Shown here in pieces: positions 1 through 64,000 of a stretch of 64,000 nt of DNA. The notes beneath the pieces are model-generated. The model worked only from the letters and a program-made list of their open reading frames with translations. It was not told the DNA's origin and searched no databases. This stretch comes from Bugula neritina (Eukaryota > Animalia > Bryozoa). A program made the translations under genes and the position numbers. The stretch covers positions 10,110,480 through 10,174,479 of the forward strand of contig OZ037771.1 of the NCBI GenBank assembly GCA_964035545.1. The letters are read 5' to 3'. Every line of letters begins with the position of its first letter. The stretch's first letter is position 1.

Positions 1-1060
1 ACACTCTGAGTAATACTGCAAAATGCTGAAATATACTGTAACACAGTGAAGTATACTGCAAAATTCTGAAACATACTGCAACATACTAAAACATGAGCAA
101 TATACTGAAAAATGCCTCAGCATACTCAAATATACTGCAAGATGCTGCAACATACGTAAATACACTGTAACATACTGAAATACACTGCAACATACTGCAG
201 CATACTGAAGTACACTGTAAAATATTGAAATACACTGCAACACATTGGAATATACTGCAACACACTGAAATATACTGCAACATACTGAAATATACTGCAA
301 CATACTGCAACATACTAAAGTGCACTGTAACATACTGTAACTTACTGAAATACACGGCAACAAACTGTAACATACTGAAACACACTGAAACATACTGAAA
401 CATACTGAAACATACTGAGACATACTGAAATACACTGCAACATACTGAAACATACTGAAATATACTGAAATATACTAAAATACACTGGAACACATTGAAA
501 AATACTGCAACATACTGAAAGACACTTCAACCCACTGAAGTATAGTGTAATATACGGAAATGTACTGTAACATACTGATATTTACTGTAACACACTGAAA
601 TATACTGCAACATACTGAAATACACTGTAACATACCGAAATAAACTGCAACATAATGCAACATACTGAATTACACTGTAACATACTAAAATACACTGCAA
701 CATTCTGCAACATACTTCAACGTACTGAAAGACACTGTAACATAATGAAATACACTGCAACACATTGAAATATACCGCAACAGACTGGAATATACTGCAA
801 CACATCCAAGTACATCGTAATATACGGACATGTACTGTAACATACTGGAACATACTGAAATACACTGCAACAAACTGTAACATACTGAAACACACTGAAA
901 CATACTGAAACATACTGAAACATACTGTAACATACTGAAACACACTGAAACATACTGAAACATACTGAGACATACTGAAATACACTGCAACATACTGCAA
1001 CATACTGAAATATACTGAAATATACTGAAATACACTGTAACACATTGAAAAATACCGCAA

Positions 1061-1134
1061 CATACTGAAAGACACTTCAACTCACTGAAGTATAGTGTAA
1101 TATACGGAAATGTACTGTAACATACTGATATTTA
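1061..1134 (+). repeat. Module-boundary landmark (example copy; ~109 copies by manual count): catactgaaagacact(a/t)caactcactgaagtatagtg(t/c)aatatac(g/a)gaaatgtact(g/c)taacatactgatattta
   Basis: The same run of atypical decamers opens every module, e.g. 531, 1081, 1371, 8519, 26866, 40274, 47317, 63694. Confidence 0.92.
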
Positions 1135-1860
1135 CTGTAACACACTGAAATGAACTGCAACATACTGAAATACACTGTAACATGCCAAAATAAACTGCAA
1201 CATACTGCAACATACTGAAATACACTGTAACATACTCAAATACACTGCAACATTCTGCAACATATTGAAATATACTGCAACACACTGAAATATACTGCAA
1301 CACACTGAAATATACTGCAAAATACTGAAATATACTTCAACATACTGCAACATACTGAAAGACACTACAACTCACTGAAGTATAGTGCAATATACAGAAA
1401 TGTACTCTAACATACTGATATTTAATGTTACACACTGAAATATACTAAAACATACTGAAATACACTGTAACATACCGAAATAAGCTGCAACATACTGCAA
1501 CATACTGAAATACACTGTAACATGATGAAGTACACTGCAACACATTGAAATACACTGCAACAAACTGAAATATACTGCAACATACTGAAATGTACTGCAA
1601 CATGCTGAAACTAATTGCAACATATCGAAGTATATCGTAAAATACGGACATGTACTGTAACATACTGAAACACACTGAAACATACTGAAACATACTGAAA
1701 CATACTGAAACATACTGAGATACACTGCAACATACTGCAACATACTGAAATACACTGTAACATGATGAAATACACTGCAACACATTGGAATATACTGCAA
1801 CAAACTGGAATATACTGCAACATACTGAAATGTGCTGCAACATACTGAAATACATTACAA

Positions 1861-1900
1861 TATATCGAAGTATATCGTAATATACGGACATGTACTGTAA
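1861..1900 (+). repeat. CpG-rich subunit cassette (example copy): tatatcgaagtatatcgtaatatacggacatgtactgtaa, recurring every 230-240 bp inside the long modules
   Basis: Seen at 1621/1861, 3041/3271, ~8770/9000/9240, ~24100/24340/24580, ~25480/25720/25960 and ~44190/44430. Confidence 0.9.
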
Positions 1901-10000: not shown

Positions 10001-13000
10001 CACTGCAACATACCGAAATAAGCTGCAACATACTGCAACATACTGAAATACACTGTAACATGATGTAGTACACTGCAACACATTGAAATATACTGCAACA
10101 CACTGAAATATACTGCAAAATACTGAATTATACTTCAACATACTGCAACATACTGAAAGACACTACAACTCATTGAAGTATAGTGCAATATACAGAAATG
10201 TACTCTAACATACTGATATTTAATGTTACACACTGAAATATACTACAACATACTGAAATACACTGTAACATACCGAAATAAGCTGCAACATACTGCAACA
10301 TACTGAAATACACTGTAACATGATGAAGTACACTGCAACACATTGAAATACACTGCAACAAACTGAAATATACTGCATCATACTGAAATGTACTGCAACA
10401 TACTGAAATACATTGCAACATATCGAAGTATATCGTAATAAACGGACATGTACTGAAACATACTGAAACACACTGAAACATACTGAAACATACTGAAACA
10501 TACTGAAATACACTGCAACAAACTGCAACATACTGAAACATACTGTAACATGATGAAAAACACTGCAACACATTGAAATATACTGCAACAAACTGAAATA
10601 TACTGCAACATACTGAAACGTACTGCAACATACTGAAACTAATTGCAACATATCGAAGTATATCGTAAAATACGGACATGTACTGTAACATACTGAAACA
10701 CACTGAAACATACTGAAACATACTGAAACATACTGAAACATACTGAGATACACTGCAACATACTGCAACATACTGAAATACACTGTAACATGATGAAATA
10801 CACTGCAACACATTGGAATATACTGCAACAAACTGGAATATACTGCAACATACTGAAACGTGCTGCAACATACTGAAATACATTGCAATATATCGAAGTA
10901 TATCGTAATATACGGACATGTACTGTAACATACTGAAACACACTGAAACATACTGAAACATACTAAAATATACTGAAACATACTGAAATACACTCTAACA
11001 CATTGAAAAATACTGCAACATACTGAAGGACACTTCAACTCACTGAAGTATAGTGTAATATACAGAAATGTACTGTAACATACTGATATTTACTGTAACA
11101 CACTGAAATATACTGCAACATACTGAAATACACTGTAACATACCGAAATAAGCTGCAACATAATGCAACATACTGAATTACACTGTAACATACTAAAATA
11201 CACTGCAACATTCTGCAACATACTTCAACGTACTGAAAGACACTGTAACATAATGAAATACACTGCAACACATTGGAATATACCGCAACAGACAGGAATA
11301 TACTGCAACACATCCAAGTACATAGTAGTATACGGACATGTACTGTAACATACTGGAACATACTGAAACATACTGCAACATTCTGAAGTACACTGTAAAA
11401 TATTGAAATACACCGCAACAAACTGCAACATATTGAAGTACACTGTACATATTGAAAAACACTGCAACACACTGAAATATACTGCAACACACTGAAATAT
11501 ACTGCAAAAAAACTGAATTATACTTCAACATACTGCAACATACTGAAAGACACTACAACTCACTGAAGTATAGTACAATATACAGAAATGTATTCTAACA
11601 TACTGATATTTAATGTTACACACTGAAATATACTACAACATACTGAAATACACTGCAACATACCGAAATAAGCTGCAACATACTGCAACATACTGAAATA
11701 CACTGTAACATGATGTAGTACACTGCAACACATTGAAATATACTGCAACACAATGAAATATACTGCAAAATACTGAAATATACTGCAACACATCCAAGTA
11801 GACTGTAATATACGGACATGTACTGTAACATACTGAAACAAAATGAAATATACTGTAACACTCTGAGTAATACTGCAAAATGCTGAAATATACTGTAACA
11901 CAGTGAAGTATACTGCAAAATTCTGAAACATACTGCAACATACTAAAACATGAGCCATATACTGAAAAATGCCTCAGCATACTCAAATATACTGCAAGAT
12001 GCTGCAACATACGTAAATACACTGTAACATACTGAAATACACTGCAACATACTGCAGCATAGTGAAGTACACTGTAAAATATTGAAATACACTGCAACAC
12101 ATTGGAATATACTGCAACACACTGAAATATACTGCAACATACTGAAATATACTGCAACATACTGCAACATACTAAAGTGCACTGTAGCATACTGTAACTT
12201 ACTGAAATACACTGCAACAAACTGTAACATACTGAAACACACTGAAACATACTGAAACATACTGAAACATACTGTAAGATACTGAAACACACTGAAACAT
12301 ACTGAAACATACTGAGACATACTGAAATACACTGCAACATACTGAAACATACTGAAATATACTGAAATATACTAAAATACACTGGAACACATTGAAAAAT
12401 ACTGCAACATACTGAAAGACACTTCAACCCACTGAAGTATAGTGTAATATACGGAAATGTACTGTAACATACTGATATTTACTGTAACACACTAAAATAT
12501 ACTGCAACATACTGAAATACACTGTAACATACCGAAATAAACTGCAACATAATGCAACATACTGAATTACACTGTAACATACTAAAATACACTGCAACAT
12601 TCTGCAACATACTTCAACGTACTGAAAGACACTGTAACATAATGAAATACACTGCAACACATTGAAATATACCGCAACAGACTGGAATATACTGCAACAC
12701 ATCCAAGTACATCGTAATATACGGACATGTACTGTAACATACTGGAACATACAGAAATACACTGCAACAAACTGTAACATACTGAAACACACTGAAACAT
12801 ACTGAAACATACTGAAACATACTGTAACATACTGAAACACACTGAAACATACTGAAACATACTGAGACATACTGAAATACACTGCAACATACTGCAACAT
12901 ACTGAAATATACTGAAATATACTGAAATACACTGTAACACATTGAAAAATACCGCAACATACTGAAAGACACTTCAACTCACTGAAGTATAGTGTAATAT

Positions 13001-16000
13001 ACGGAAATGTACTGTAACATACTGATATTTACTGTAACACACTGAAATGAACTGCAACATACTGAAATACACTGTTACATGCCAAAATAAACTGCAACAT
13101 ACTGCAACATACTGAAATACACTGTAACATACTCAAATACACTGCAACATTCTGCAACATATTGAAATATACTGCAACACACTGAAATATACTGCAACAC
13201 ACTGAAATATACTGCAAAATACTGAAATATACTTCAACATACTGCAACATACTGAAAGACACTACAACTCACTGAAGTATAGTGCAATATACAGAAATGT
13301 ACTCTAACATACTGATATTTAATGTTACACACTGAAATATACTAAAACATACTGAAATACACTGTAACATACCGAAATAAGCTGCAACATACTGCAACAT
13401 ACTGAAATACACTGTAACATGATGAAGTACACTGCAACACATTGAAATACACTGCAACAAACTGAAATATACTGCAACATACTGAAATGTACTGCAACAT
13501 ACTGAAATACATTGCAACATATCGAAGTATATCGTAATAAACGGACATGTACTGAAACATACTGAAACACACTGAAACATACGGAAACATACTGAAACAT
13601 ACTGAAATACACTGCGACAAACTGCAACATACTGAAACATACTGTAACATGATGAAAAACACTGCAACACATTGAAATATACTGCAACAAACTGAAATAT
13701 ACTGCAACATACTGAAACGTACTGCAACATACTGAAACTAATTGCAACATATCGAAGTATATCGTAAAATACGGACATGTACTGTAACATACTGAAACAC
13801 ACTGAAACATACTGAAACATACTGAAACATACTGAAACATACTGAGATACACTGCAACATACTGCAACATACTGAAATACACTGTAACATGATGAAATAC
13901 ACTGCAACACATTGGAATATACTGCAACAAACTGGAATATACTGCAACATACTGAAATGTGCTGCAACATACTGAAATACATTGCAATATATCGAAGTAT
14001 ATCGTAATATACGGACATGTACTGTAACATACTGAAACACACTGAAACATACTGAAACATACTAAAATATACTGAAACATACTGAAATACACTGTAACAC
14101 ATTGAAAAATGCTGCAACATACTGAAGGACACTTCAACTCACTGAAGTATAGTGTAATATACAGAAATGTACTGTAACATACTGATATTTACTATAACAC
14201 ACTGAAATATACTGCAACATACTGAAATACACTGTAACATACCGAAATAAACTGCAACATAATGCAACATACTGAATTACACTGTAACATACTAAAATAC
14301 ACTGCAACATTCTGCAACATACTTCAACGTACTGAAAGACACTGTAACATAGTGAAATACACTGCAACACATTGAAATATACCGCAACAGACAGGAATAT
14401 ACTGCAACACATCCAAGTACATAGTAGTATACGGACATGTACTGTAACATACTGGAACATACTGAAACATACTGCAACATTCTGAAGTACACTGTAAGAT
14501 ATTGAAATACACCGCAACAAACTGCAACATATTGAAGTACACTGTACATATTGAAAAACACTGCAACACACTGAAATATACTGCAACACACTGAAATATA
14601 CTGCAAATAAACTGAATTATACTTCAACATACTGCAACATACTGAAAGACACTACAACTCACTGAAGTATAGTGCAATATACAGAAATGTATTCTAACAT
14701 ACTGATATTTAATGTTACACACTGAAATATACTACAACATACTGAAATACACTGCAACATACCGAAATAAGCTGCAACATACTGCAACATACTGAAATAC
14801 ACTGTAACATGATGTAGTACACTGCAACACATTGAAATATACTGCAACACACTGAAATATACTGCAAAATACTGAATTATACTTCAACATACTGCAACAT
14901 ACTGAAAGACACTACAACTCACTGAAGTATAGTGCAATATACAGAAATGTACTCTAACATACTGATATTTAATGTTACACACTGAAATATACTACAACAT
15001 ACTGAAATACACTGTAACATACCGAAATAAGCTGCAACATACTGCAACATACTGAAATACACTGTAACATGATGAAGTACACTGCAACACATTGAAATAC
15101 ACTGCAACAAACTGAAATATACTGCATCATACTGAAATGTACTGCAACATACTGAAATACATTGCAACATATCGAAGTATATCGTAATAAACGGACATGT
15201 ACTGAAACATACTGAAACACACTGAAACATACTGAAACATACTGAAACATACTGAAATACACTGCAACAAACTGCAACATACTGAAACATACTGTAACAT
15301 GATGAAAAACACTGCAACACATTGAAATATACTGCAACAAACTGAAATATACTGCAACATACTGAAACGTACTGCAACATACTGAAACTAATTGCAACAT
15401 ATCGAAGTATATCGTAAAATACGGACATGTACTGTAACATACTGAAACACACTGAAACATACTGAAACATACTGAAACATACTGAAACATACTGAGATAC
15501 ACTGCAACATACTGCAACATACTGAAATACACTGTAACATGATGAAATACACTGCAACACATTGGAATATACTGCAACAAACTGGAATATACTGCAACAT
15601 ACTGAAACGTGCTGCAACATACTGAAATACATTGCAATATATCGAAGTATATCGTAATATACGGACATGTACTGTAACATACTGAAACACACTGAAACAT
15701 ACTGAAACATACTAAAATATACTGAAACATACTGAAATACACTCTAACACATTGAAAAATACTGCAACATACTGAAGGACACTTCAACTCACTGAAGTAT
15801 AGTGTAATATACAGAAATGTACTGTAACATACTGATATTTACTGTAACACACTGAAATATACTGCAACATACTGAAATACACTGTAACATACCGAAATAA
15901 GCTGCAACATAATGCAACATACTGAATTACACTGTAACATACTAAAATACACTGCAACATTCTGCAACATACTTCAACGTACTGAAAGACACTGTAACAT

Positions 16001-19000
16001 AATGAAATACACTGCAACACATTGGAATATACCGCAACAGACAGGAATATACTGCAACACATCCAAGTACATAGTAGTATACGGACATGTACTGTAACAT
16101 ACTGGAACATACTGAAACATACTGCAACATTCTGAAGTACACTGTAAAATATTGAAATACACCGCAACAAACTGCAACATATTGAAGTACACTGTACATA
16201 TTGAAAAACACTGCAACACACTGAAATATACTGCAACACACTGAAATATACTGCAAAAAAACTGAATTATACTTCAACATACTGCAACATACTGAAAGAC
16301 ACTACAACTCACTGAAGTATAGTACAATATACAGAAATGTATTCTAACATACTGATATTTAATGTTACACACTGAAATATACTACAACATACTGAAATAC
16401 ACTGCAACATACCGAAATAAGCTGCAACATACTGCAACATACTGAAATACACTGTAACATGATGTAGTACACTGCAACACATTGAAATATACTGCAACAC
16501 AATGAAATATACTGCAAAATACTGAAATATACTGCAACACATCCAAGTAGACTGTAATATACGGACATGTACTGTAACATACTGAAACAAAATGAAATAT
16601 ACTGTAACACTCTGAGTAATACTGCAAAATGCTGAAATATACTGTAACACAGTGAAGTATACTGCAAAATTCTGAAACATACTGCAACATACTAAAACAT
16701 GAGCCATATACTGAAAAATGCCTCAGCATACTCAAATATACTGCAAGATGCTGCAACATACGTAAATACACTGTAACATACTGAAATACACTGCAACATA
16801 CTGCAGCATAGTGAAGTACACTGTAAAATATTGAAATACACTGCAACACATTGGAATATACTGCAACACACTGAAATATACTGCAACATACTGAAATATA
16901 CTGCAACATACTGCAACATACTAAAGTGCACTGTAGCATACTGTAACTTACTGAAATACACTGCAACAAACTGTAACATACTGAAACACACTGAAACATA
17001 CTGAAACATACTGAAACATACTGTAAGATACTGAAACACACTGAAACATACTGAAACATACTGAGACATACTGAAATACACTGCAACATACTGAAACATA
17101 CTGAAATATACTGAAATATACTAAAATACACTGGAACACATTGAAAAATACTGCAACATACTGAAAGACACTTCAACCCACTGAAGTATAGTGTAATATA
17201 CGGAAATGTACTGTAACATACTGATATTTACTGTAACACACTAAAATATACTGCAACATACTGAAATACACTGTAACATACCGAAATAAACTGCAACATA
17301 ATGCAACATACTGAATTACACTGTAACATACTAAAATACACTGCAACATTCTGCAACATACTTCAACGTACTGAAAGACACTGTAACATAATGAAATACA
17401 CTGCAACACATTGAAATATACCGCAACAGACTGGAATATACTGCAACACATCCAAGTACATCGTAATATACGGACATGTACTGTAACATACTGGAACATA
17501 CAGAAATACACTGCAACAAACTGTAACATACTGAAACACACTGAAACATACTGAAACATACTGAAACATACTGTAACATACTGAAACACACTGAAACATA
17601 CTGAAACATACTGAGACATACTGAAATACACTGCAACATACTGCAACATACTGAAATATACTGAAATATACTGAAATACACTGTAACACATTGAAAAATA
17701 CCGCAACATACTGAAAGACACTTCAACTCACTGAAGTATAGTGTAATATACGGAAATGTACTGTAACATACTGATATTTACTGTAACACACTGAAATGAA
17801 CTGCAACATACTGAAATACACTGTTACATGCCAAAATAAACTGCAACATACTGCAACATACTGAAATACACTGTAACATACTCAAATACACTGCAACATT
17901 CTGCAACATATTGAAATATACTGCAACACACTGAAATATACTGCAACACACTGAAATATACTGCAAAATACTGAAATATACTTCAACATACTGCAACATA
18001 CTGAAAGACACTACAACTCACTGAAGTATAGTGCAATATACAGAAATGTACTCTAACATACTGATATTTAATGTTACACACTGAAATATACTAAAACATA
18101 CTGAAATACACTGTAACATACCGAAATAAGCTGCAACATACTGCAACATACTGAAATACACTGTAACATGATGAAGTACACTGCAACACATTGAAATACA
18201 CTGCAACAAACTGAAATATACTGCAACATACTGAAATGTACTGCAACATACTGAAATACATTGCAACATATCGAAGTATATCGTAATAAACGGACATGTA
18301 CTGAAACATACTGAAACACACTGAAACATACGGAAACATACTGAAACATACTGAAATACACTGCGACAAACTGCAACATACTGAAACATACTGTAACATG
18401 ATGAAAAACACTGCAACACATTGAAATATACTGCAACAAACTGAAATATACTGCAACATACTGAAACGTACTGCAACATACTGAAACTAATTGCAACATA
18501 TCGAAGTATATCGTAAAATACGGACATGTACTGTAACATACTGAAACACACTGAAACATACTGAAACATACTGAAACATACTGAAACATACTGAGATACA
18601 CTGCAACATACTGCAACATACTGAAATACACTGTAACATGATGAAATACACTGCAACACATTGGAATATACTGCAACAAACTGGAATATACTGCAACATA
18701 CTGAAATGTGCTGCAACATACTGAAATACATTGCAATATATCGAAGTATATCGTAATATACGGACATGTACTGTAACATACTGAAACACACTGAAACATA
18801 CTGAAACATACTAAAATATACTGAAACATACTGAAATACACTGTAACACATTGAAAAATGCTGCAACATACTGAAGGACACTTCAACTCACTGAAGTATA
18901 GTGTAATATACAGAAATGTACTGTAACATACTGATATTTACTATAACACACTGAAATATACTGCAACATACTGAAATACACTGTAACATACCGAAATAAA

Positions 19001-21275
19001 CTGCAACATAATGCAACATACTGAATTACACTGTAACATACTAAAATACACTGCAACATTCTGCAACATACTTCAACGTACTGAAAGACACTGTAACATA
19101 GTGAAATACACTGCAACACATTGAAATATACCGCAACAGACAGGAATATACTGCAACACATCCAAGTACATAGTAGTATACGGACATGTACTGTAACATA
19201 CTGGAACATACTGAAACATACTGCAACATTCTGAAGTACACTGTAAGATATTGAAATACACCGCAACAAACTGCAACATATTGAAGTACACTGTACATAT
19301 TGAAAAACACTGCAACACACTGAAATATACTGCAACACACTGAAATATACTGCAAATAAACTGAATTATACTTCAACATACTGCAACATACTGAAAGACA
19401 CTACAACTCACTGAAGTATAGTGCAATATACAGAAATGTATTCTAACATACTGATATTTAATGTTACACACTGAAATATACTACAACATACTGAAATACA
19501 CTGCAACATACCGAAATAAGCTGCAACATACTGCAACATACTGAAATACACTGTAACATGATGTAGTACACTGCAACACATTGAAATATACTGCAACACA
19601 CTGAAATATACTGCAAAATACTGAATTATACTTCAACATACTGCAACATACTGAAAGACACTACAACTCACTGAAGTATAGTGCAATATACAGAAATGTA
19701 CTCTAACATACTGATATTTAATGTTACACACTGAAATATACTACAACATACTGAAATACACTGTAACATACCGAAATAAGCTGCAACATACTGCAACATA
19801 CTGAAATACACTGTAACATGATGAAGTACACTGCAACACATTGAAATACACTGCAACAAACTGAAATATACTGCATCATACTGAAATGTACTGCAACATA
19901 CTGAAATACATTGCAACATATCGAAGTATATCGTAATAAACGGACATGTACTGAAACATACTGAAACACACTGAAACATACTGAAACATACTGAAACATA
20001 CTGAAATACACTGCAACAAACTGCAACATACTGAAACATACTGTAACATGATGAAAAACACTGCAACACATTGAAATATACTGCAACAAACTGAAATATA
20101 CTGCAACATACTGAAACGTACTGCAACATACTGAAACTAATTGCAACATATCGAAGTATATCGTAAAATACGGACATGTACTGTAACATACTGAAACACA
20201 CTGAAACATACTGAAACATACTGAAACATACTGAAACATACTGAGATACACTGCAACATACTGCAACATACTGAAATACACTGTAACATGATGAAATACA
20301 CTGCAACACATTGGAATATACTGCAACAAACTGGAATATACTGCAACATACTGAAACGTGCTGCAACATACTGAAATACATTGCAATATATCGAAGTATA
20401 TCGTAATATACGGACATGTACTGTAACATACTGAAACACACTGAAACATACTGAAACATACTAAAATATACTGAAACATACTGAAATACACTGTAACACA
20501 TTGAAAAATACTGCAACATACTGAAGGACACTTCAACTCACTGAAGTATAGTGTAATATACAGAAATGTACTGTAACATACTGATATTTACTGTAACACA
20601 CTGAAATATACTGCAACATACTGAAATACACTGTAACATACCGAAATAAGCTGCAACATAATGCAACATACTGAATTACACTGTAACATACTAAAATACA
20701 CTGCAACATTCTGCAACATACTTCAACGTACTGAAAGACACTGTAACATAATGAAATACACTGCAACACATTGAAATATACCGCAACAGACAGGAATATA
20801 CTGCAACACATCCAAGTACATAGTAGTATACGGACATGTACTGTAACATACTGGAACATACTGAAACATACTGCAACATTCTGAAGTACACTGTAAAATG
20901 TTGAAATACACCGCAACAAACTGCAACATATTGAAGTACACTGTACATATTGAAAAACACTGCAACACACTGAAATATACTGCAACACACTGAAATATAC
21001 TGCAAAAAAACTGAATTATTCTTCAACATACTGCAACATACTGAAAGACACTACAACTCACTGAAGTATAGTACAATATACAGAAATGTATTCTAACATA
21101 CTGATATTTAATGTTACACACTGAAATATACTACAACATACTGAAATACACTGCAACATACCGAAATAAGCTGCAACATACTGCAACATACTGAAATACA
21201 CTGTAACATGATGTAGTACACTGCAACACATTGAAATATACTGCAACACAATGAAATATACTGCAAAATACTGAA
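7023..21275 (+). repeat. 4749 bp HOR, three tandem copies; 8 modules: 550,290,870,520,260,870,520,869
   Basis: Landmarks at 7679,8229,8519,9389,9909,10169,11039,11559,12428. ORF offsets 7194/11943/16692, 8520/13269/18018 and 11035/15784/20533 are all +4749. Confidence 0.95.
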
Positions 21276-22966
21276 TTATACTTCAACATACTGCAACATA
21301 CTGAAAGACACTACAACTCACTGAAGTATAGTGCAATATACAGAAATGTACTCTAACATACTGATGTTTAATGTTACACACTGAAATATACTACAACATA
21401 CTGAAATACACTGTAACATACCGAAATAAGCTGCAACATACTGCAACATACTGAAATACACTGTAACATGATGAAGTACACTGCAACACATTGAAATACA
21501 CTGCAACAAACTGAAATATACTGCATCATACTGAAATGTACTGCAACATACTGAAATACATTGCAACATATCGAAGTATATCGTAATAAACGGACATGTA
21601 CTGAAACATACTGAAACACACTGAAACATACTGAAACATACTGAAACATACTGAAATACACTGCAACAAACTGCAACATACTGAAACATACTGTAACATG
21701 ATGAAAAACACTGCAACACATTGAAATATACTGCAACAAACTGAAATATACTGCAACATACTGAAACGTACTGCAACATACTGAAACTAATTGCAACATA
21801 TCGAAGTATATCGTAAAATACGGACATGTACTGTAACATACTGAAACACACTGAAACATACTGAAACATACTGAAACATACTGAAACATACTGAGATACA
21901 CTGCAACATACTGCAACATACTGAAATACACTGTAACATGATGAAATACACTGCAACACATTGGAATATACTGCAACAAACTGGAATATACTGCAACATA
22001 CTGAAATGTGCTGCAACATACTGAAATACATTGCAATATATCGAAGTATATCGTAATATACGGACATGTACTGTAACATACTGAAACACACTGAAACATA
22101 CTGAAACATACTAAAATATACTGAAACATACTGAAATACACTGTAACACGTTGAAAAATACTGCAACATACTGAAGGACACTTCAACTCACTGAAGTATA
22201 GTGTAATATACAGAAATGTACTGTAACATACTGATATTTACTGTAACACACTGAAATATACTGCAACATACTGAAATACACTGTAACATACCGAAATAAA
22301 CTGCAACATAATGCAACATACTGAATTACACTGTAACATACTAAAATACACTGCAACATTCTGCAACATACTTCAACGTACTGAAAGACACTGTAACATA
22401 ATGAAATACACTGCAACACATTGAAATATACCGCAACAGACAGGAATATACTGCAACACATCCAAGTACATAGTAGTATACGGACATGTACTGTAACATA
22501 CTGGAACATACTGAAACATACTGCAACATTCTGAAGTACACTGTAAGATATTGAAATACACCGCAACAAACTGCAACATATTGAAGTACACTGTACATAT
22601 TGAAAAACACTGCAACACACTGAAATATACTGCAACACACTGAAATATATTGCAAAAAAACTGAATTATACTTCAACATACTGCAACATACTGAAAGACA
22701 CTACAACTCACTGAAGTATAGTGCAATATACAGAAATGTATTCTAACATACTGATATTTAATGTTACACACTGAAATATACTACAACATACTGAAATACA
22801 CTGCAACATACCGAAATAAGCTGCAACATACTGCAACATACTGAAATACACTGTAACATGATGTAGTACACTGCAACACATTGAAATATACTGCAACACA
22901 CTGAAATATACTGCAAAATACTGAATTATACTTCAACATACTGCAACATACTGAAAGACACTACAA
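18017..22966 (+). repeat. 1650 bp sub-HOR (870+520+260), three tandem copies; overlaps the last 4749 copy and is also the internal repeat of the 4749 HOR
   Basis: Landmarks at 18017,19667,21317,22967. ORF offsets 18883/20533/22183 and 19408/21058/22708 are +1650. Confidence 0.93.
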
Positions 22967-40273: not shown

Positions 40274-40466
40274 CTCACTGAAGTATAGTGCAATATACAG
40301 AAATGTATTCTATCATACTGATATTTAATGTTACACACTGAAATATACTACAACATACTGAAATACACTGCAACATATCGAAATAAGCTGCAACATACTG
40401 CAACATACTGAAATACACTGTAACATGATGTAGTACACTGCAACACATTGAAATATACTGCAACAA

Positions 40467-43400
40467 ACTGAAATATACTGCAACATACTGAAACGTACTG
40501 CAACATACTGAAACCAATTGCAACATATCGAAGTATATCGTAAAATACGGACACGTACTGTAACATACTGAAACACACTGAAACATACTGAAACATACTG
40601 AAACATACTGAAACATACTGAGATACACTGCAACAAACTGCAACATACTGAAACATACTGTAACATGATGAAATACACTGAAACACATTGAAATATACTG
40701 CAACAAACTGAAATATACTGCAACATACTGAAACGTACTGCAACATACTGAAATTAATTGCAACATATCAAAGTATATCGTAATATACGGACATGTACTG
40801 TAACATACTGAAACACACTGAAACATACTGAAACATACTGAAACATGCTGAAACATACTGTGATACACTGCAACATACTGCAACATACTGAAATACACTG
40901 TAACATGATGAAATACACTGCAACACATTGAAATATACTGCAACAAACTGAAATATACTGCAACATACTGAAACCTGCTGCAACATACGGAAATACATTG
41001 CAATATATCGAAGTATGTCGTAATATACGGACATGTACTGTAACATACTGAAACACACTGAAACATACTGAAACGTACTGAGATATACTGAAATACACTG
41101 TAACACATTGAAAAATACTGCAACATACTGAAAGACACTTCAACTCACTGAAGTATAGTGTAATGTACGGAAATGTACTGTAACATACTGATATTTACTG
41201 TTACACACTGAAATATACTGCAACATACTGAAATACACTGTAACATACCGAAATAAACTGCAACATAATGCAACATACTGAATTACACTGTAACATACTA
41301 AAATACACCGCAACATTCTGCCACATACTGCAACATACTGAAATACACTGTAACAGGATGAAGTACACTGCAACACATTGAAATACACTGCAACAAACTG
41401 AAATATACTGCAACATACTGAAATGTACTGCAACATACTAAAATACATTGCAACATATCGAAGTATATCGTAATAAACGGACATGTACTGTAACATACTG
41501 AAACACACTGAAACATACTGAAACATATTGAAACATACTGAAACATACTGAAATACACTGCAACATACTGCAACATACAAAAACATACTGTAACATGATG
41601 AAATGCACTGCAACACATTGAAATATACTGCAACAAACTGAAAAATACTGCAACATACTGAAACGTACTGCAACGTACTGAAATTAATTGCAACATATCA
41701 AAGTATTCCGTAATATACGGACATGTACTGTAACATACTGAAACACACTGAAACATACTGAAACATACTGAAATATACTGAAATGTACTGGAATACACTG
41801 TAACACATTGAAAAATACTGCAACATACTGAAAGACACTTCAATTCACTGAAGTATAGTGTAATATACGGAAATGTACTGTAACATACTGATAATTACTG
41901 CAACACACTGAAATATACTGCAACATACTGAAATACACTGTAACATACCGAAATAAACTGCAACATAATGCAACATACTGAATTACACTGTAACATTCTG
42001 CAACATAGTTCAACGTACTGAATACACTGTAACATAATGAAATACACTGCAACATAGTGCAACATACTGAAATATACTGTAACATACTGAAACATGAGCA
42101 ATATACTGAAAGATGCCTCAACATACTCAAATACACTGCAAGAAACTGCAACATACGTAAATACACTGTAACATACTGAAATACACTGAAATATACTGCA
42201 ACATACTGAAACGTACTGCAACATACTGAAACTAATTGCAACATATCGAAGTATATCGTAAAATACGGACATGTACTGTAACATACTGAAACACACTGAA
42301 ACATACTGAAACATACTGAAACATACTGAAACATACTGAGATACACTGCAACAAACTGCAACATACTGAAACATACTGTAACATGATGAAATACACTGAA
42401 ACACATTGAAATATACTGCAACAAACTGAAATATACTGCAACATACTGAAACGTACTGCAACATACTGAAATTAATTGCAACATATCAAAGTATATCGTA
42501 ATATACGGACATGTACTGTAACATACTGAAACACACTGAAACATACTGAAACATACTGAAACATGCTGAAACATACTGTGATACACTGCAACATACTGCA
42601 ACATACTGAAATACACTGTAACATGATGAAATACACTGCAACACATTGAAATATACTGCAACAAACTGAAATATACTGCAACATACTGAAACCTGCTGCA
42701 ACATACTGAAATACATTGCAATATATCGAAGTATGTCGTAATATACGGACATGTACTGTAACATACTGAAACACACTGAAACATACTGAAACGTACTGAG
42801 ATATACTGAAATACACTGTAACACATTGAAAAATACTGCAACATACTGAAAGACACTTCAACTCACTGAAGTATAGTGTAATGTACGGAAATGTACTGTA
42901 ACATACTGATATTTACTGTTACACACTGAAATATACTGCAACATACCGAAATACACTGTAACATACCGAAATAAACTGCAACATAATGCAACATACTGAA
43001 TTACACTGTAACATACTAAAATACACCGCAACATTCTGCCACATACTGCAACATACTGAAATACACTGTAACAGGATGAAGTACACTGCAACACATTGAA
43101 ATACACTGCAGCAAACTGAAATATACTGCAACATACTGAAATGTACTGCAACATACTAAAATACATTGCAACATATCGAAGTATATCGTAATAAACGGAC
43201 ATGTACTGTAACATACTGAAACACACTGAAACATACTGAAACATATTGAAACATACTGAAACATACTGAAATACACTGCAACATACTGCAACATACAAAA
43301 ACATACTGTAACATGATGAAATACACTGCAACACATTGAAATATACTGCAACAAACTGAAAAATACTGCAACATACTGAAACGTACTGCAACGTACTGAA

Positions 43401-43905
43401 ATTAATTGCAACATATCAAAGTATACCGTAATATACGGACATGTACTGTAACATACTGAAACACACTGAAACATACTGAAACATACTGAAGTATACTGAA
43501 ATGTACTGAAATACACTGTAACACATTGAAAAATACTGCAACATACTGAAAGACACTTCAATTCACTGAAGTATAGTGTAATATACGGAAATGTACTGTA
43601 ACATACTGATAATTACTGCAACACACTGAAATATACTGCAACATACTGAAATACACTGTAACATACCGAAATAAACTGCAACATAATGCAACATACTGAA
43701 TTACACTGTAACATTCTGCAACATAGTTCAACGTACTGAATACACTGCAACATAATGAAATACACTGCAACATACTGCAACATACTGAAATATACTGTAA
43801 CATACTGAAACATGAGCAATATACTGAAAGATGCCTCAACATACTCAAATACACTGCAAGAAACTGCAACATACGTAAATACACTGTAACATACTGAAAT
43901 ACACT
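40467..43905 (+). repeat. 1718 bp tandem duplication (two copies, several SNP differences)
   Basis: ORF offsets 40754/42472, 41140/42858 and 41840/43558 are +1718. The match begins at ~40467/42185. Confidence 0.88.
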
Positions 43906-44399
43906 GAAACATACTGCAACATACTGAAGTACACTGTAAAATATTCAAATACACTGCAACACATTGAAATACACTGTAACATACCGAAATAAACTGCAAC
44001 ATAATGCAACATACTGAATTACACTGTAACATACTAAAATACACTGCAACATTCTGCAACATACTTCAACGTACTGAAAGACACTGTAACATAATGAAAT
44101 ACACTGCAACACATTGAAATATACTGCAACAAACTGAAATATACTGCAACATACTGAAACGTGCTGCAACATACTGAAATACATTGCAATATGTCGAAGT
44201 ATATCGTAATATACGGACATGTACTGTAACATACTGAAACACACTGAAACATACTGAAACATACTGAACCATACTGAAACATACTGAGATACACTGCAAC
44301 ATACTGCAACATACTGAAATACACTGTAACATGATGAAATACACTGCAACACATTGAAATATACTGCAACAAACTGAAATAAACTGCAACATACTGAAA

Positions 44400-46855
44400 C
44401 GTGCTGCAACATACTGAAATACATTGCAATATGTCGAAGTATATCGTAATATACGGACATGTACTGTAACATACTGAAACACACTGAAACATACTGAAAC
44501 ATACTGAAATATACTGAAATATACTGAAATACACTGTAACACATTGAAAAATACTGCAACATACTGAAGGACACTTCAACTCACTGAAGTATAGTGTAAT
44601 ATACAGAAATGTACTGTAACATACTGATATTTACTGTAACACACTGAAATATACTGCAACATACTGAAATACACTGTAACATACCGAAATAAACTGCAAC
44701 ATAATGCAACATACTGAATTACACTGTAACATACTAAAATACACTGCAACATTCTGCAACATACTTCAACGTACTGAAAGACACTGTAACATAATGAAAT
44801 ACACTGCAACACATTAAAATATACCGCAACAGACTGGAATATACTGCAACACATCTAAGTACATCGTAATATACGGACATGTACTGTAACATACTGGAAC
44901 ATACTGAAACATACTGCAACATTCTGAAGTACACTGCAAAATATTGAAATACACCGCAACAAACTGCAACATACTGAAGTACACTGTACATATTGAAAAA
45001 CACTGCAACACACTGAAATATACTGCAAAATACTGAATTATACTTCAACATACTGCAACATACTGAAAGACACTACAACTCACTGAAGTATAGTGCAATA
45101 TACAGAAATGTATTCTAACATACTGATATTTAATGTTACACACTGAAATATACTACAACATACTGAAATACACTGCAACATACCGAAATAAGCTGCAACA
45201 TACTGCAACATACTGAAATACACTGTAACATGATGTAGTACACTGCAACACATTGAAATATACTGCAACAAACTGAAATATACTGCAACATACTGAAACG
45301 TACTGCAACATACTGAAACTAATTGCAACATATCGAAGTATATCGTAAAATACGGACATGTACTGTAACATACTGAAACACACTGAAACATACTGACACA
45401 TACTGAAACATACTGAAACATACTGAGATACACTGCAACAAACTGCAACATACTGAAACATACTGTAACATGATGAAATACACTGAAACACATTGAAATA
45501 TACTGCAACAAACTGAAATATACTGCAACATACTGAAACGTACTGCAACATACTGAAATTAATTGCAACATATCAAAGTATATCGTAATATACGGACATG
45601 TACTGTAACATACTGAAACACACTGAAACATACTGAAACATACTGAAACATGCTGAAACATACTGTGATACACTGCAACATACTGCAACATACTGAAATA
45701 CACTGTAACATGATGAAATACACTGCAACACATTGAAATATACTGCAACAAACTGAAATATACTGCAACATACTGAAACCTGCTGCAACATACTGAAATA
45801 CATTGCAATATATCGAAGTATGTCGTAATATACGGACATGTACTGTAACATACTGAAACACACTGAAACATACTGAAACGTACTGAGATATACTGAAATA
45901 CACTGTAACACATTGAAAAATACTGCAACATACTGAAAGACACTTCAACTCACTGAAGTATAGTGTAATGTACGGAAATGTACTGCAACATACTGATATT
46001 TACTGTTACACACTGAAATATACTGCAACATACTGAAATACACTATAACATACCGAAATAAACTGCAACATAATGCAACATACTGAATTACACTGTAACA
46101 TACTAAAATACACCGCAACATTCTGCCACATACGGCAACATACTGAAATACACTGTAACAGGATGAAGTACACTGCAACACATTGAAATACACTGCAACA
46201 AACTGAAATATACTGCAACATACTGAAATGTACTGCAACATACTAAAATACATTGCAACATATCGAAGTATATCGTAATAAACGGACATGTACTGTAACA
46301 TACTGAAACACACTGAAACATACTGAAACATATTGAAACATACTGAAACATACTGAAATACACTGCAACATACTGCAACATACAAAAACATACTGTAACA
46401 TGATGAAATACACTGCAACACATTGAAATATACTGCAACAAACTGAAAAATACTGCAACATACTGAAACGTACTGCAACGTACTGAAATTAATTGCAACA
46501 TATCAAAGTATACCGTAATATACGGACATGTACTGTAACATACTGAAACACACTGAAGCATACTGAAACATACTGAAATATACTGAAATGTACTGAAATA
46601 CACTGTAACACATTGAAAAATACTGCAACATACTGAAAGACACTTCAATTCACTGAAGTATAGTGTAATGTACGGAAATGTACTGTAACATACTGATAAT
46701 TACTGCAACACACTGAAATATACTGCAACATACTGAAATTCACTGTAACATACCGAAATAAACTGCAACATAATGCAACATACTGAATTACACTGTAACA
46801 TTCTGCAACATAGTTCAACGTACTGAATACACTGTAACATAATGAAATACACTGC
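44400..46855 (+). repeat. Dispersed duplicate (+4805) of ~39600-42050: tail of the 880 module, then 499,870,700 and the start of the next module
   Basis: ORF offsets 39771/44576, 40275/45080, 41140/45945 and 41840/46645 are +4805. Confidence 0.83.
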
Positions 46856-58800: not shown

Positions 58801-61800
58801 GTAATATACGGAAATGTACTGTAACATACTGATATTTACTGTAACACACTGAAATGAACTGCAACATACTGAAATACACTGTAACATGCCAAAATAAACT
58901 GCAACATACTGCAACATACTGAAATACACTGTAACATACTCAAATACACTGCAACATTCTGCAACATATTGAAATATACTGCAACACACTGAAATATACT
59001 GCAACACACTGAAATATACTGCAAAATACTGAAATATACTTCAACATACTGCAACATACTGAAAGACACTACAACTCACTGAAGTATAGTGCAATATACA
59101 GAAATGTACTCTAACATACTGATATTTAATGTTACACACTGAAATATACTAAAACATACTGAAATACACTGTAACATACCGAAATAAGCTGCAACATACT
59201 GCAACATACTGAAATACACTGTAACATGATGAAGTACACTGCAACACATTGAAATACACTGCAACAAACTGAAATATACTGCAACATACTGAAATGTACT
59301 GCAACATGCTGAAACTAATTGCAACATATCGAAGTATATCGTAAAATACGGACATGTACTGTAACATACTGAAACACACTGAAACATACTGAAACATACT
59401 GAAACATACTGAAACATACTGAGATACACTGCAACATACTGCAACATACTGAAATACACTGTAACATGATGAAATACACTGCAACACATTGGAATATACT
59501 GCAACAAACTGGAATATACTGCAACATACTGAAATGTGCTGCAACATACTGAAATACATTACAATATATCGAAGTATATCGTAATATACGGACATGTACT
59601 GTAACATACTGAAACACACTGAAACATACTGAAACATACTAAAATATACTGAAACATACTGAAATACACTGTAACACATTGAAAAATACTGCAACATACT
59701 GAAGGACACTTCAACTCAATGAAGTATAGTGTAATATACAGAAATGTACTGTAACATACTGATATTTACTGTAACACACTGAAATATACTGCAACATACT
59801 GAAATACACTGTAACATACCGAAATAAACTGCAACATAATGCAACATACTGAATTACACTGTAACATACTAAAATACACTGCAACATTCTGCAACATACT
59901 TCAACGTACTGAAAGACACTGTAACATAATGAAATACACTGCAACACATTGAAATATACCGCAACAGACAGGAATATACTGCAACACATCCAAGTACATA
60001 GTAGTATACGGACATGTACTGTAACATACTGGAACATACTGAAACATACTGCAACATTCTGAAGTACACTGTAAAATATTGAAATACACCGCAACAAACT
60101 GCAACATATTGAAGTACACTGTACATATTGAAAAACACTGCAACACACTGAAATATACTGCAACACACTGAAATATACTGCAAAAAAACTGAATTATACT
60201 TCAACATACTGCAACATACTGAAAGACACTACAACTCACTGAAGTATAGTGCAATTAAAAGAAATGTATTCTAACATACTGATATTTAATGTTACACACT
60301 GAAATATACTACAACATACTGAAATACACTGCAACATACCGAAATAAGCTGCAACATACTGCAACATACTGAAATACACTGTAACATGATGTAGTACACT
60401 GCAACACATTGAAATATACTGCAACAGACTGAAATATACTGCAAAATACTGAATTATACTTCAACATACTGCAACATACTGAAAGACACTACAACTCACT
60501 GAAGTATAGTGCAATATACAGAAATGTACTCTAACATACTGATATTTAATGTTACACACTGAAATATACTACAACATACTGAAATACACTGTAACATACC
60601 GAAATAAGCTGCAACATACTGCAACATACTGAAATACACTGTAACATGATGAAGTACACTGCAACACATTGAAATACACTGCAACAAACTGAAATATACT
60701 GCATCATACTGAAATGTACTGCAACATACTGAAATACATTGCAACATATCGAAGTATATCGTAATAAACGGACATGTACTGAAACATACTGAAACACACT
60801 GAAACATACTGAAACATACTGAAACATACTGAGATACACTGCAACATACTGCAACATACTGAAATACACTGTAACATGATGAAATACACTGCAACACATT
60901 GGAATATACTGCAACAAACTGGAATATACTGCAACATACTGAAACGTGCTGCAACATACTGAAATACATTGCAATATATCGAAGTATATCGTAATATACG
61001 GACATGTACTGCAACATACTGAAACACACTGAAACATACTGAAACATACTGAAATATACTGAAATATACTGAAATACACTGTAACACATTGAAAAATACT
61101 GCAACATACTGAAAGACACTTCAACCCACTGAAGTATAGTGTAATATACGGAAATGTACTGTAACATACTGATATTTACTGTAACACACTGAAATATACT
61201 GCAACATACTGAAATACACTGTAACATACCGAAATAAACTGCAAGATAATGCAACATACTGAATTACACTGTAACATACTAAAATACACTGTAACATTCT
61301 GCAACATACTTCAACGTACTGAAAGACACTGTAACATAATGAAATACACTGCAACACATTGAAATATACCGCAACAGACTGGAATATACTGCAACACATC
61401 CAAGTACATCGTAATATACGGACATGTACTGTAACATACTGGAACATACTGAAATACACTGCAACAAACTGTAACATACTGAAACACACTGAAACATACT
61501 GAAACATGCTGAAACATACTGTAACATACTGAAACACACTGAAACATACTGAAACATACTGAGACATACTGAAATACACCGCAACATACTGCAACATACT
61601 GAAATATACTGAAATATACTGAAATACACTGTAACACATTGAAAAATACCGCAACATACTGAAAGACACTTCAACTCACTGAAGTATAGTGTAATATACG
61701 GAAATGTACTGTAACATACTGATATTTACTGTAACACACTGAAATGAACTGCAACATACTGAAATACACTGTTACATGCCAAAATAAACTGCAACATACT

Positions 61801-64000
61801 GCAACATACTGAAATACACTGTAACATACTCAAATACACTGCAACATTCTGCAACATATTGAAATATACTGCAACACACTGAAATATACTGCAACACACT
61901 GAAATATACTGCAAAATACTGAAATATACTTCAACATACTGCAACATACTGAAAGACACTACAACTCACTGAAGTATAGTGCAATATACAGAAATGTACT
62001 CTAACATACTGATATTTAATGTTACACACTGAAATATACTAAAACATACTGAAATACACTGTAACACACCGAAATAAGCTGCAACATACTGCAACATACT
62101 GAAATACACCGTAACATGATGAAGTACACTGCAACACATTGAAATACACTGCAACAAACTGAAATATACTGCAACATACTGAAATGCACTGCAACATACT
62201 GAAATACATTGCAACATATCGAAGTATATCGTAATAAATGGACATGTACTGAAACATACTGAAACATACTGAAACATACTGAAACATACTGAAACATACT
62301 GAAATACACTGTAACAAACTGAAATACACTGCAACAAGTTGGAATATACTGCAACATACCCAAGTATATGGTAATATAATGAAATGTACTGCAACATACC
62401 GCAACATACTCAAAAACACTGTAACAAACTGAAATACGCTGCAACACATTGGAATAAACTGCGACATATCGAAATAAATGGTAATATACTGAAATATATT
62501 GAAATACACTGTAACACATTGAAAAATACTGCAACATACTGAAACACACTACAACTCGCTGAAGTATAGTGTAACTTACTGAAATGTACTGTAACATAAT
62601 GATATTTACTGCAACACACTGAAACATACTGCAACATACTGAAATACACTGTTACATACTAAAATACACTGCAACATACTAAAATACACTGCAACAACCT
62701 GCAACATTCTGCAACATACTTCAACATACTGAAAAACACTGTAACAAACTGAAATACGCTGCAACACATTGGAATATACTGCAACATACCCAAATAAATG
62801 GTAACATACTGAAATATACTGAAATACAATGTAACACATTGAAAAATACTGCAACACACTGAAAGACACTACAACTCACTGAAGTATAGTGTAATATATG
62901 AAAACGTACTGTAACATACTGATATTTACTGCAACACACTGAAATATACTGCAACATACTGAAATACACTGTTACATGCCAAAATAAACTGCAACATACT
63001 GCAACATACTGAAATACACTGTAACATACTCAAATACACGGCAACATTCTGCAACATATTGAAATATACTGCAACACACTGAAATATACTGCAACACATC
63101 CAAGTAGACTGTAATATACGGACATGTACTGTAACATACTGAAACAAAATGAAATATACTGTAACACTCTGAGTAATACTGCAAAATGCTGAAATATACT
63201 GTAACACAGTGAAGTATACTGCAAAATTCTGAAACATACTGCAACATACTAAAACATGAGCAATATACTGAAAAATGCCTCAGCATACTCAAATATACTG
63301 CAAGATGCTGCAACATACGTAAATACACTGTAACATACTGAAATACACTGCAACATACTGCAGCATACTGAAGTACACTGTAAAATATTGAAATACACTG
63401 CAACACATTGGAATATACTGCAACACACTGAAATATACTGCAACATACTGAAATATACTGCAACATACTGCAACATACTAAAGTGCACTGTAACATACTG
63501 TAACTTACTGAAATACACGGCAACAAACTGTAACATACTGAAACACACTGAAACATACTGAAACATACTGAAACATACTGAGACATACTGAAATACACTG
63601 CAACATACTGAAACATACTGAAATATACTGAAATATACTAAAATACACTGGAACACATTGAAAAATACTGCAACATACTGAAAGACACTTCAACCCACTG
63701 AAGTATAGTGTAATATACGGAAATGTACTGTAACATACTGATATTTACTGTAACACACTGAAATATACTGCAACATACTGAAATACACTGTAACATACCG
63801 AAATAAACTGCAACATAATGCAACATACTGAATTACACTGTAACATACTAAAATACACTGCAACATTCTGCAACATACTTCAACGTACTGAAAGACACTG
63901 TAACATAATGAAATACACTGCAACACATTGAAATATACCGCAACAGACTGGAATATACTGCAACACATCCAAGTACATCGTAATATACGGACATGTACTG
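46856..64000 (+). repeat. 5459 bp HOR, right block: three full near-identical copies plus a partial copy
   Basis: ORF offsets 46872/52331/57790/63249 are +5459. It matches the left block at +46786. The family-diagnostic variant gcaattaaaagaaa occurs at ~2551, 49337, 54796 and 60255. Confidence 0.96.

Follow-up and report, generated by a model that had tools for sequence, protein, structure and literature searches.

A decamer-based satellite with nested higher-order repeats in the bryozoan Bugula neritina: a candidate centromere DNA

Satellites of 5–12 bp units, such as the 10-bp AATAACATAG, are found in Drosophila, and the kangaroo rat harbours the 10-bp HS-beta: these are largely homogeneous simple repeats, whose ~10-bp units fill megabase heterochromatic blocks near centromeres. 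In human HSat2/3, a short ancestral unit of 5 bp has decayed to variants that are arranged in chromosome-specific kilobase units, which measure 1.77 kb on chromosome 1, 1366 bp in another subfamily and 3.6 kb in DYZ1 (HSat3A6); the subfamilies are specific to a chromosome or region and form megabase arrays beside centromeres, with strands of unequal composition (PMC4022460). Primate alpha satellite is built on an AT-rich monomer of ~171 bp, about one nucleosome, and is organized in higher-order repeats (HORs) whose copies (over 99% identical) are far closer to one another than the units inside them. Variants of these HORs have arisen through in-register deletion or duplication of units; the HORs are chromosome-specific, some subfamilies being common to several chromosomes, and active human arrays are 'regimented' over megabases. 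A survey covering 325 genomes of the Darwin Tree of Life, whose main text makes no mention of Bugula or Bryozoa, reports monomers under 100 bp in 32 of 263 candidate centromere satellite families, as well as recurrent HORs (bioRxiv 10.64898/2026.09.17.752431).

The window analysed here, a stretch of 64,000 nucleotides, lies on chromosome 7 of Bugula neritina (assembly tzBugNeri2.1, 10.11–10.17 Mb). An uninterrupted 10/20-bp satellite occupies it from position 1 to 64000 on the plus strand, the strand of all features described below. TRF returns a single head-to-tail array at 13–63965 with period 20 and 71% matches; in ungapped comparison, 66.5% of positions agree at lag 10 and 73% at lag 20. 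The leading decamer is CATACTGAAA (25% of decamer counts), followed by TATACTGCAA, TACACTGCAA, CACACTGAAA and TACACTGTAA. Composition is uniform throughout, with a GC content of 0.33, a GC skew of −0.26 and an AT skew of +0.31, A and C being abundant on the plus strand. Membership in HSat2/3 by derivation from (CATTC)n was rejected: the TRF consensus is ATACTGCAACATACTGAAAT and the window is devoid of a pentameric period, identity at lag 5 being 0.32. Assignment to alpha satellite fails on the 10/20-bp period and the bryozoan host, and lag identities in the window reveal no 171-bp period. The minus strand stays open over a stretch of 340 codons, and the consensus is free of stop triplets on that strand; a coding reading was discarded, because the 10-bp period and indels in 10-bp steps, neither being multiples of 3, rule out a conserved reading frame. 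No coding or RNA signal was seen in the satellite, and Rfam gave 0 matches.

At the genome scale, the satellite forms one compound locus per chromosome on at least seven of the nine chromosomes (1–7), at 0.41–0.65 of chromosome length, with relative positions calculated from lengths taken in part from PMC11480708. The arrays lie at 14.695–15.5 Mb on chromosome 1, 17.85–19.11 Mb on chromosome 2, 17.90–18.32 Mb on chromosome 3, 14.54–15.45 Mb on chromosome 4, 9.78 Mb on chromosome 5, 6.98–7.39 Mb on chromosome 6 and 9.67–10.35 Mb on chromosome 7, where the edges fall within 9.65–9.69 and 10.33–10.36 Mb. Large unplaced scaffolds are also filled by the satellite. The placed arrays, as bounded by probes, total about 4.3–4.9 Mb; 46,674 matches to an 18-mer would translate into about 12 Mb at the chromosome 7 rate of ~3.4–3.9 matches per kb, an estimate regarded as unreliable, since the consensus dimer is far denser on unplaced scaffolds and in some blocks. 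On chromosomes 8 and 9 no array appeared in 150-bp probes spaced 435–800 kb, nor did the pattern listings that reached these chromosomes contain a match; this negative is weak, as blind probing every 435–650 kb also overlooked the arrays of chromosomes 5 and 6 that were later found by pattern. A 20-bp repeat in a chromosome 8 probe proved to be a minisatellite of only ~0.5 kb, and a weak 10-bp signal at 3.55 Mb of chromosome 6 reflects degenerate decamers over a few hundred bp and no array. The decamer spectrum is alike on chromosomes 1–4 and 7. HOR periods differ between chromosomes, for instance 3779 on chromosome 1 and 5515 on chromosome 3, and long k-mers are rarely shared, so that chromosome- or domain-specific HOR variants stand on one base unit.

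This distribution bears out the centromere-like pattern that the first-pass annotation had envisaged, with one central compound locus on each of chromosomes 1–7; on chromosomes 8 and 9 the weak probing described showed no array. The chromosomes would be monocentric, and the arrays appear to mark their centromeric or pericentromeric regions; judged from chromosomal position, the satellite is a plausible and good candidate for centromere DNA. We tentatively suggest that it may be the kinetochore-forming DNA of B. neritina, with CenH3 chromatin assembled on a unit of one helical turn and arrays renewed by recursive local tandem duplication. It is likewise possible that the arrays represent constitutive heterochromatin, pericentromeric or other, and that the functional centromere is specified by another sequence or epigenetically. 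HSat2/3, the nearest architectural analogue, is pericentromeric and not kinetochore-forming (PMC4022460), and several features of the Bugula arrays fit such a role: strands switch inside the arrays of chromosomes 2 and 6 and of scaffold C135, transposons are inserted within arrays, rDNA sits between the two satellite patches of chromosome 6 (probe L058), and chromosomes 8 and 9 are without a detected array. Against it speak the confinement of the satellite to a single compound locus in the central third of seven of nine chromosomes and the lack of any other large satellite in about 190 genome probes.

The internal organization of the window is disclosed by an 11-mer landmark, ACTGATATTTA, which occurs 101 times and whose spacings define modules. 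Every module starts with a cassette, a conserved block of ~200–260 bp with atypical decamers around the anchor (one example spans 504–764, its anchor at 574); over all 101 anchors, column conservation is 0.9–1.0 from −70 to about +130/+190 of the anchor. Identity comparison indicates that modules are sequence classes, more than mere lengths. Members of the 550 class are 98.7–99.8% identical; those of the 520/519/499 class share 97.2–99.8% among themselves and about 92% with the 550 class, and the 290 and 260 classes are about 93% identical. The 870 class takes in 880 and 860 modules, while the 640 and 630 modules are an 870 less 230 and 240 bp, respectively; 819, 849 and 869 make up one further class, 910 and 590 another. 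Indels are nearly all multiples of 10; the exceptions are a few single deletions of 1 bp, by which the phase is shifted once in each HOR. A ~240-bp subunit, proposed at first pass as a tier of its own, survives as the cassette carried by each module and as local 230–260 bp duplications present besides it, but not as an array-wide period: identity is 67.6% at lag 240 versus 65–66% at adjacent lags.

Modules are in turn arranged in HORs, and exact 30–80-mers recur at lags of 5459, 4749, 4336, 4536, 1650, 2890, 2569 and 3099. The module strings of the 5459, 4749, 4536 and 1650 repeats given in the first-pass annotation were reproduced from the one 11-bp landmark; its 590,320 in the 5459 HOR corresponds to a 910 module by ACTGATATTTA spacing, with sums in agreement. 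The window opens with the right end of a left 5459-bp block (1–6032; lag 5459 identity 1.0), whose start lies about 18.7 kb ahead of position 1 and which contributes one full copy at 574–6032, with the string 550,290,640,520,260,630,550,290,910,819. A junction unit, 550,290,849, follows at 6033–7721, the 849 being a variant of 869 about 20 bp shorter. The 4749-bp block (7722–18059) comprises two full copies of 550,290,870,520,260,870,520,869 and the start of a third, with 6 mismatches between copies. Units of 1650 bp (870,520,260) occupy 18060–22229: they are a sub-amplification of positions 841–2490 of the 4749 HOR, to whose interior they are 99.7% identical, and end in a 1130 module that combines a 260 module lacking its anchor with an 870. 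The non-periodic junction string 520,260,590,290,880,499,860,520,260 extends over 22230–26908. Three copies of the 4536 HOR (870,519,1478,290,880,499) span 26909–40316; the middle one, with its 1478 shortened to 1278 by a 200-bp deletion, measures 4336 bp, and copies 1 and 3 differ by 5 mismatches. At 40317–47359 come an 870, two diverged 1718-bp units (183 mismatches between them), 499, 870 and 1368. The right 5459-bp block, with three full copies at 47360–63736, completes the series. Mismatches between successive 5459 copies number 7, 1 and 8, the 8 being those of the copy at 574–6032 against that at 47360; overall, adjacent HOR copies differ by 0–8 bases. Identity is 66–73% at the level of 10/20 bp versus 99.85–100% between HOR copies, and the HOR families have colinear blocks of 0.3–1.6 kb in common at 97–99.7%. 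Module classes and HOR copies together substantiate a real multi-tier satellite.

The blocks belong to a still larger unit, a composite segment of 43–57 kb duplicated in tandem at 99.9% identity or better. The segment at 40317–47359 is the tail of copy 1; copy 2 starts near 47305, is opened by the right 5459-bp block and runs to about 90.7 kb, past the end of the window. The two match over 22.0 kb at lag 57704 (23 mismatches), 16.6 kb at lag 48206 (9 mismatches), where the junction string of 22230–26908 recurs, and 13.6 kb at lag 43870 (2 mismatches). Their structural differences come down to two copies of the 4749 HOR and one of the 4336-bp form; besides these whole-HOR differences, 34 substitutions are found over 52 kb. 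What had been taken for several coexisting HOR families is rather a succession of parts of one duplicated segment. Over the 264 kb examined on chromosome 7, a contiguous array except for two inserts, module order is strongly constrained: with classes denoted by letters, A is followed by B in 31 of 35 cases, C by a in 30 of 35, D by A in 22 of 26 and b by C or c in 19 of 21. Such constraint is consistent with a single ancestral order from which in-register unequal exchange deleted and duplicated modules. The idea of a shared module vocabulary consequently holds in so far as the same modules and local orders recur; they are not freely combined, the strings being derivatives of one ancestral order. 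Judged from sequence, this vocabulary is evidently a footprint of common descent from the order A B C a b C a D.

Taken as a whole, the window lies in a ~0.68-Mb array that consists of the major tandem satellite in B. neritina and that probably grew by repeated tandem duplication and in-register unequal exchange. Six layers are distinguished. The oldest is the 10-bp unit, 66% identical between neighbours, followed by the 20-bp dimer (73%), a cassette unit of ~260–290 bp, and triplets of ~1.4–1.75 kb, [550,290,870] and [520,260,870], whose counterparts are about 92–93% identical. HORs of 4.3–5.5 kb in 2–5 local copies, at 99.85–100%, form the fifth layer and the duplicated 43–57 kb segment the youngest. 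Later deletions and duplications, all in 10-bp multiples, would have reshaped the ancestral module order. Heterochromatin poor in recombination would be the setting, and unequal sister-chromatid or replication-template exchange the putative mechanism. For the one junction module tested, 849, an origin by crossover between 819 and 869 modules was rejected: it is an 869 variant and no clean recombinant of the flanking types. No direct crossover footprint was seen.

Because copies of 5–50 kb at 99.9–100% identity are at the limit of HiFi resolution, copy numbers could depend on the assembly, and so perhaps could the top tier. It is improbable that the upper tiers are in part an artefact, through wrong copy numbers or two haplotypes joined in tandem. 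The handful of bases separating adjacent HOR copies would favour such an error, the differences between the super-repeat copies resemble those of allelic satellite haplotypes, and large satellite scaffolds were left unplaced. However, the 264 kb contain no N and hence form a single contig without a scaffold join, private substitutions in the copies allow HiFi reads to tell them apart, and a 40-mer specific to the 5459 HOR has exactly 7 matches genome-wide, all in the two chromosome 7 blocks and with no extra copy on unplaced scaffolds; in addition, multi-kb HORs of like kind are present in the arrays of four other chromosomes. A functional box in the cassette, a protein-binding site or recombination hotspot setting module borders and rendering HORs combinatorial, is very unlikely: although the cassette is the best-conserved portion of every module, contains most CpGs (161 CGGA sites) and is common to chromosome 7 and one chromosome 2 block, indel breakpoints fall away from the landmark (module offset 178 for the start of the 230-bp deletion, 260 for that of the 240-bp one), many 10–50 bp indels lie elsewhere, module order is nearly deterministic, and multi-kb HORs form on chromosomes 1, 4, 5 and 6 even though the 37-mer landmark is absent from their arrays.

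Set beside the described systems, the Bugula satellite shares with HSat2/3 the kilobase units of decayed short variants, the chromosome- or region-specific subfamilies and the long arrays with strands of unequal composition (PMC4022460). It differs in its 10/20-bp unit of CATACTGAAA type in place of CATTC, with no sequence similarity, in its bryozoan host, and in HORs that are low-copy (2–5) local families inside a ~50-kb super-repeat, with no one unit homogenised over megabases. Like alpha satellite, it displays HOR copies far closer than their constituent units, variants produced by in-register unit changes, and chromosome-specific HORs alongside a shared subfamily, here that of the landmark on chromosomes 7, 2 and 3; its 10-bp unit is unlike the alpha monomer, and no CENP-B-box-like motif was identified in it. 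In contrast to regimented human arrays, many HOR families of short life make up a patchwork here, and the pattern is nearer to the 'heterogeneous' HORs of Arabidopsis as presented in the survey (10.64898/2026.09.17.752431). With the sub-nucleosomal satellites described there it has in common a single site per chromosome, seen here on chromosomes 1–7, mostly same-strand organization, recurrent HORs and transposon inserts. The Drosophila and HS-beta satellites resemble it in unit length and heterochromatic setting near centromeres; they are of other sequence, and the Bugula array stands apart by 66–73% identity at the unit level and deep higher-order structure.

As no published description of a Bugula satellite was found in the searchable literature, the first-pass view of an undescribed satellite is supported. 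Its claim of an unusual architecture is not, since kilobase units on a 5-bp base have long been known in HSat2/3 and DYZ1 (PMC4022460) and short-monomer families with HORs occur among Darwin Tree of Life genomes: this is a new satellite built in an already known way, and no new genome architecture. Thanks to its unusually clean nesting, with exact module strings, indels in 10-bp steps and identities that climb from 66% to 100%, it serves well as a natural case of unequal exchange building and reshuffling HORs. Annotators should be aware that roughly 2% or more of the assembly, and several unplaced scaffolds, are one satellite. To our knowledge, nothing is known about the centromeres of Bryozoa. 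The analysis yields a candidate sequence, locates its arrays on seven chromosomes and offers a 20-mer usable as a FISH or ChIP probe. If the kinetochore-forming role proposed above were true, Bryozoa would have its first defined centromere sequence, and the arrays would be renewed through six nested tiers of up to ~50 kb, with no single HOR being homogenised.

The tzBugNeri2.1 assembly of Bugula neritina spans 216.00 Mb and includes nine chromosomes, with chromosome 7 measuring 15.81 Mb (PMC11480708 Table 3); the assembly analysed here contains 216,009,554 bp in 321 contigs, and the window corresponds to C7:10110480-10174479 (C1-C9 designate the chromosomes). A single tandem array fills the window from 13 to 63965, with a period of 20, the consensus ATACTGCAACATACTGAAAT and 71% matches according to TRF. 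Nearly all of the array lies in one orientation and its composition is uniform (GC 0.33, GC skew -0.26, AT skew +0.31). Ungapped self-identity amounts to 66.5% at a lag of 10 and 73% at a lag of 20. The unit of one helical turn with its phased A-run suggests that the satellite may be intrinsically curved.

Higher-order repeats (HORs), named here by their period, are built on this base unit. Exact repeats of 30-, 50- and 80-mers in the window recur at lags of 5459, 4749, 4336, 4536, 1650, 2890, 2569 and 3099. Period 5459 occupies 1-6.5 kb and 47-64 kb, period 4749 extends over 7-21 kb, period 1650 over 18-22 kb and period 4536/4336 over 27-40 kb, and neighbouring HOR copies are separated by 0-8 base differences. 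Each HOR is restricted to a short stretch and present in few copies. A 40-mer diagnostic of the 5459 HOR matches the genome at exactly 7 sites, all within the two 5459 blocks, and at least 12 different periods of 3-9 kb succeed one another across 264 kb (the window and 100 kb on either side), each dominant over just 10-20 kb.

Within the HORs, modules are delimited by a landmark, the 11-mer ACTGATATTTA, which has 101 matches in the window. Its spacings reproduce all the module strings proposed in the first-pass annotation, the sole difference being that 590 followed by 320 forms one interval of 910. The 100 anchor-to-anchor intervals comprise 53 distinct sequences, and the modules are real sequence classes. 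Class A (550 bp) is 98.7-99.8% identical internally and ∼92% identical to class a (520, 519 and 499; 97.2-99.8% within), and classes B (290) and b (260) are ∼93% identical to each other. Class C (870, with variants 880 and 860) shows 88-91% identity to class D (819, 849 and 869; 97-99% within), and members of class E (910 and 590) are 95% identical. Module 640 is a class C sequence without 230 bp at offset 178, module 630 one without 240 bp at offset 260, and the intervals 1130, 1278, 1478, 1368 and 1718 are composites left by anchor loss. Indels are almost all multiples of 10 bp, and the decamer phase is shifted once per HOR by a few single-base deletions. Every module starts with a conserved cassette of ∼200-260 bp, and modules 260 and 290 are hardly more than this cassette. 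The previously proposed subunit of ∼240 bp thus holds as a recurring cassette and as local duplications of 230-260 bp, but not as a period: lag identity revealed no array-wide 240-bp periodicity in the window.

Module order is nearly deterministic over the 264 kb: A is followed by B in 31 of 35 cases, C by a in 30 of 35, D by A in 22 of 26 and b by C/c in 19 of 21. The HOR families have in common colinear blocks of 0.3-1.6 kb that are 97-99.7% identical, and the 1650 unit matches the interior of the 4749 HOR with 99.7% identity. These features are as predicted by descent from one ancestral order through in-register deletion and duplication; the modules are not freely combined. Breakpoints of the larger indels, when compared with the landmark, showed no coincidence with it.

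The block order of the window is repeated past its right end: a 5459 block, modules 550, 290 and 849, a 4749 block, 1650 units, a junction string, a 4536 block and 1718 units. Window coordinates -10399..46801 and 47305..90671, which reach into the flanking DNA (C7:10.100-10.201 Mb; fetched loci L190 and L191-L199), match in three colinear pieces: 22.0 kb at lag 57704 with 23 mismatches, 16.6 kb at lag 48206 with 9, and 13.6 kb at lag 43870 with 2. The steps between these lags correspond to two copies of the 4749 HOR and one of 4336 bp. HOR blocks make up a composite of 43-57 kb, or super-repeat, which is present as a tandem duplicate of at least 99.9% identity whose copies differ in nested HOR number only, and the window covers approximately one of its periods. 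Because the match is colinear and the lag steps amount to whole HOR copies, the several HOR families thought to coexist in 64 kb are instead consecutive parts of one tandemly duplicated segment. Copy numbers and this top tier may be an assembly artefact; against this reading, the 264 kb are free of any N, the repeat copies carry private differences and the 5459 marker has no additional copies elsewhere in the genome.

Identity rises with repeat length, from 66% at 10 bp and 73% at 20 bp, through ∼92-93% for A versus a and B versus b and 97-99.8% for one class across HORs, to 99.85-100% for HOR copies and at least 99.9% for super-repeat copies. This ladder, together with the 10-bp-step indels, the constrained module order and the mostly same-strand array, is best explained by recursive tandem duplication, through which the satellite would have grown. 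The agent would be either unequal sister-chromatid exchange or replication-template switching, operating where meiotic recombination is low. Such growth is the classical model of satellite and HOR evolution. No crossover footprint was demonstrated in the case tested.

A coding role was rejected, as the period is not divisible by three and the longest stop-free stretch in the window, 340 minus-strand codons, arises from composition, the T/G-rich strand consensus being without stop triplets; gene predictors may return spurious repetitive ORFs on this satellite. A structured RNA was likewise discarded after an Rfam search gave 0 matches.

Exact-pattern listings and short probes provided a genome-wide map, in which the satellite forms one compound locus on each of C1-C7. 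The arrays lie at 14.695-15.5 Mb on C1 (an 18-mer is absent everywhere before 14,695,309), 17.85-19.11 Mb on C2 (strand order -,+,-,+), 17.90-18.32 Mb on C3, 14.54-15.45 Mb on C4, about 9.78 Mb on C5 and 9.67-10.35 Mb on C7, and C6 harbours patches at 6.98-6.99 Mb (-) and 7.39 Mb (+) with an rDNA probe in between. All are positioned at 0.41-0.65 of chromosome length. This central, one-locus-per-chromosome distribution makes a centromeric or pericentromeric site on monocentric chromosomes likely and, by virtue of position, the satellite is a candidate centromere DNA. C8 and C9 gave no match in probes or in the pattern listings reaching them, but may still carry arrays, as those on C5 and C6 also escaped this probing. 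Placed arrays sum to about 4.3-4.9 Mb, equivalent to 2.0-2.3% of the assembly. Large unplaced scaffolds, including C106 and C135, also consist of this satellite and may be the missing C8/C9 arrays or haplotype copies. The consensus 20-mer dimer is abundant at C106:527-606 kb and C135:23-197 kb, and C135 displays strand switches and some 5459-bp spacings.

The sampled chromosomes have the same decamer spectrum, but differ in HOR periods and long k-mers. A landmark 37-mer has 193 matches, all on the plus strand; they lie on C7, in the 18.91-19.11 Mb block of C2, at one C3 site and nowhere else, and the module vocabulary of the first-pass annotation hence belongs to one subfamily. The C2 array contains at least three strand switches and carries the C7 landmark cassette in its last plus-strand block only, which suggests that exchange may have occurred between chromosomes 2 and 7.

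Non-satellite inserts of ∼3-5 kb break the C7 array at window coordinates -29.9..-27 kb and +146..+150 kb and at C7:9.95 Mb (L012). Around 50 kb past the right array edge, C7:10400001-10401000 (L017) shows weaker 10-bp periodicity in the opposite orientation, with a lag-10 identity of 0.59, and may be an old inverted remnant. Between the C6 patches, C6:7270001-7270150 (L058) appears to be the reverse complement of the 28S rDNA 5' end. Short degenerate decamer-family runs (TACACTGTAA / TATACTGTAA) occur at C6:3.5498-3.5506 Mb (L161:4780-5110 and 5510-5620), distant from every array and beside non-repetitive DNA, perhaps as a dispersed seed or as a fragment brought in by a transposon. An unrelated minisatellite of ∼0.5 kb occupies C8:5309641-5310160 (L043), with a 20-bp unit, ATAACCCTAGTATTCTAAGT, 98% identity between units and 14 exact dimer matches, all at this site. 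The unplaced contig C10 begins (1-150; L081) with CCCCAA repeats, a ciliate-type telomere.

The satellite is undescribed in the searchable literature, which holds neither its sequence nor any Bugula or bryozoan satellite or centromere, and the genome notes do not mention it. Its architecture has clear precedents. Human HSat2/3, of 5-bp origin, form chromosome-specific units of 1.77 kb, 1.37 kb and 3.6 kb (DYZ1) (PMC4022460), analogously deriving kilobase units from a short base unit. Among 325 Darwin Tree of Life genomes, a survey whose main text does not name Bugula counts 32 families of candidate centromere satellites with monomers below 100 bp and separates 'regimented' from 'heterogeneous' HORs (10.64898/2026.09.17.752431). 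The Bugula satellite is an unusually legible case of nested HOR growth and the first candidate centromere satellite for a poorly studied phylum.
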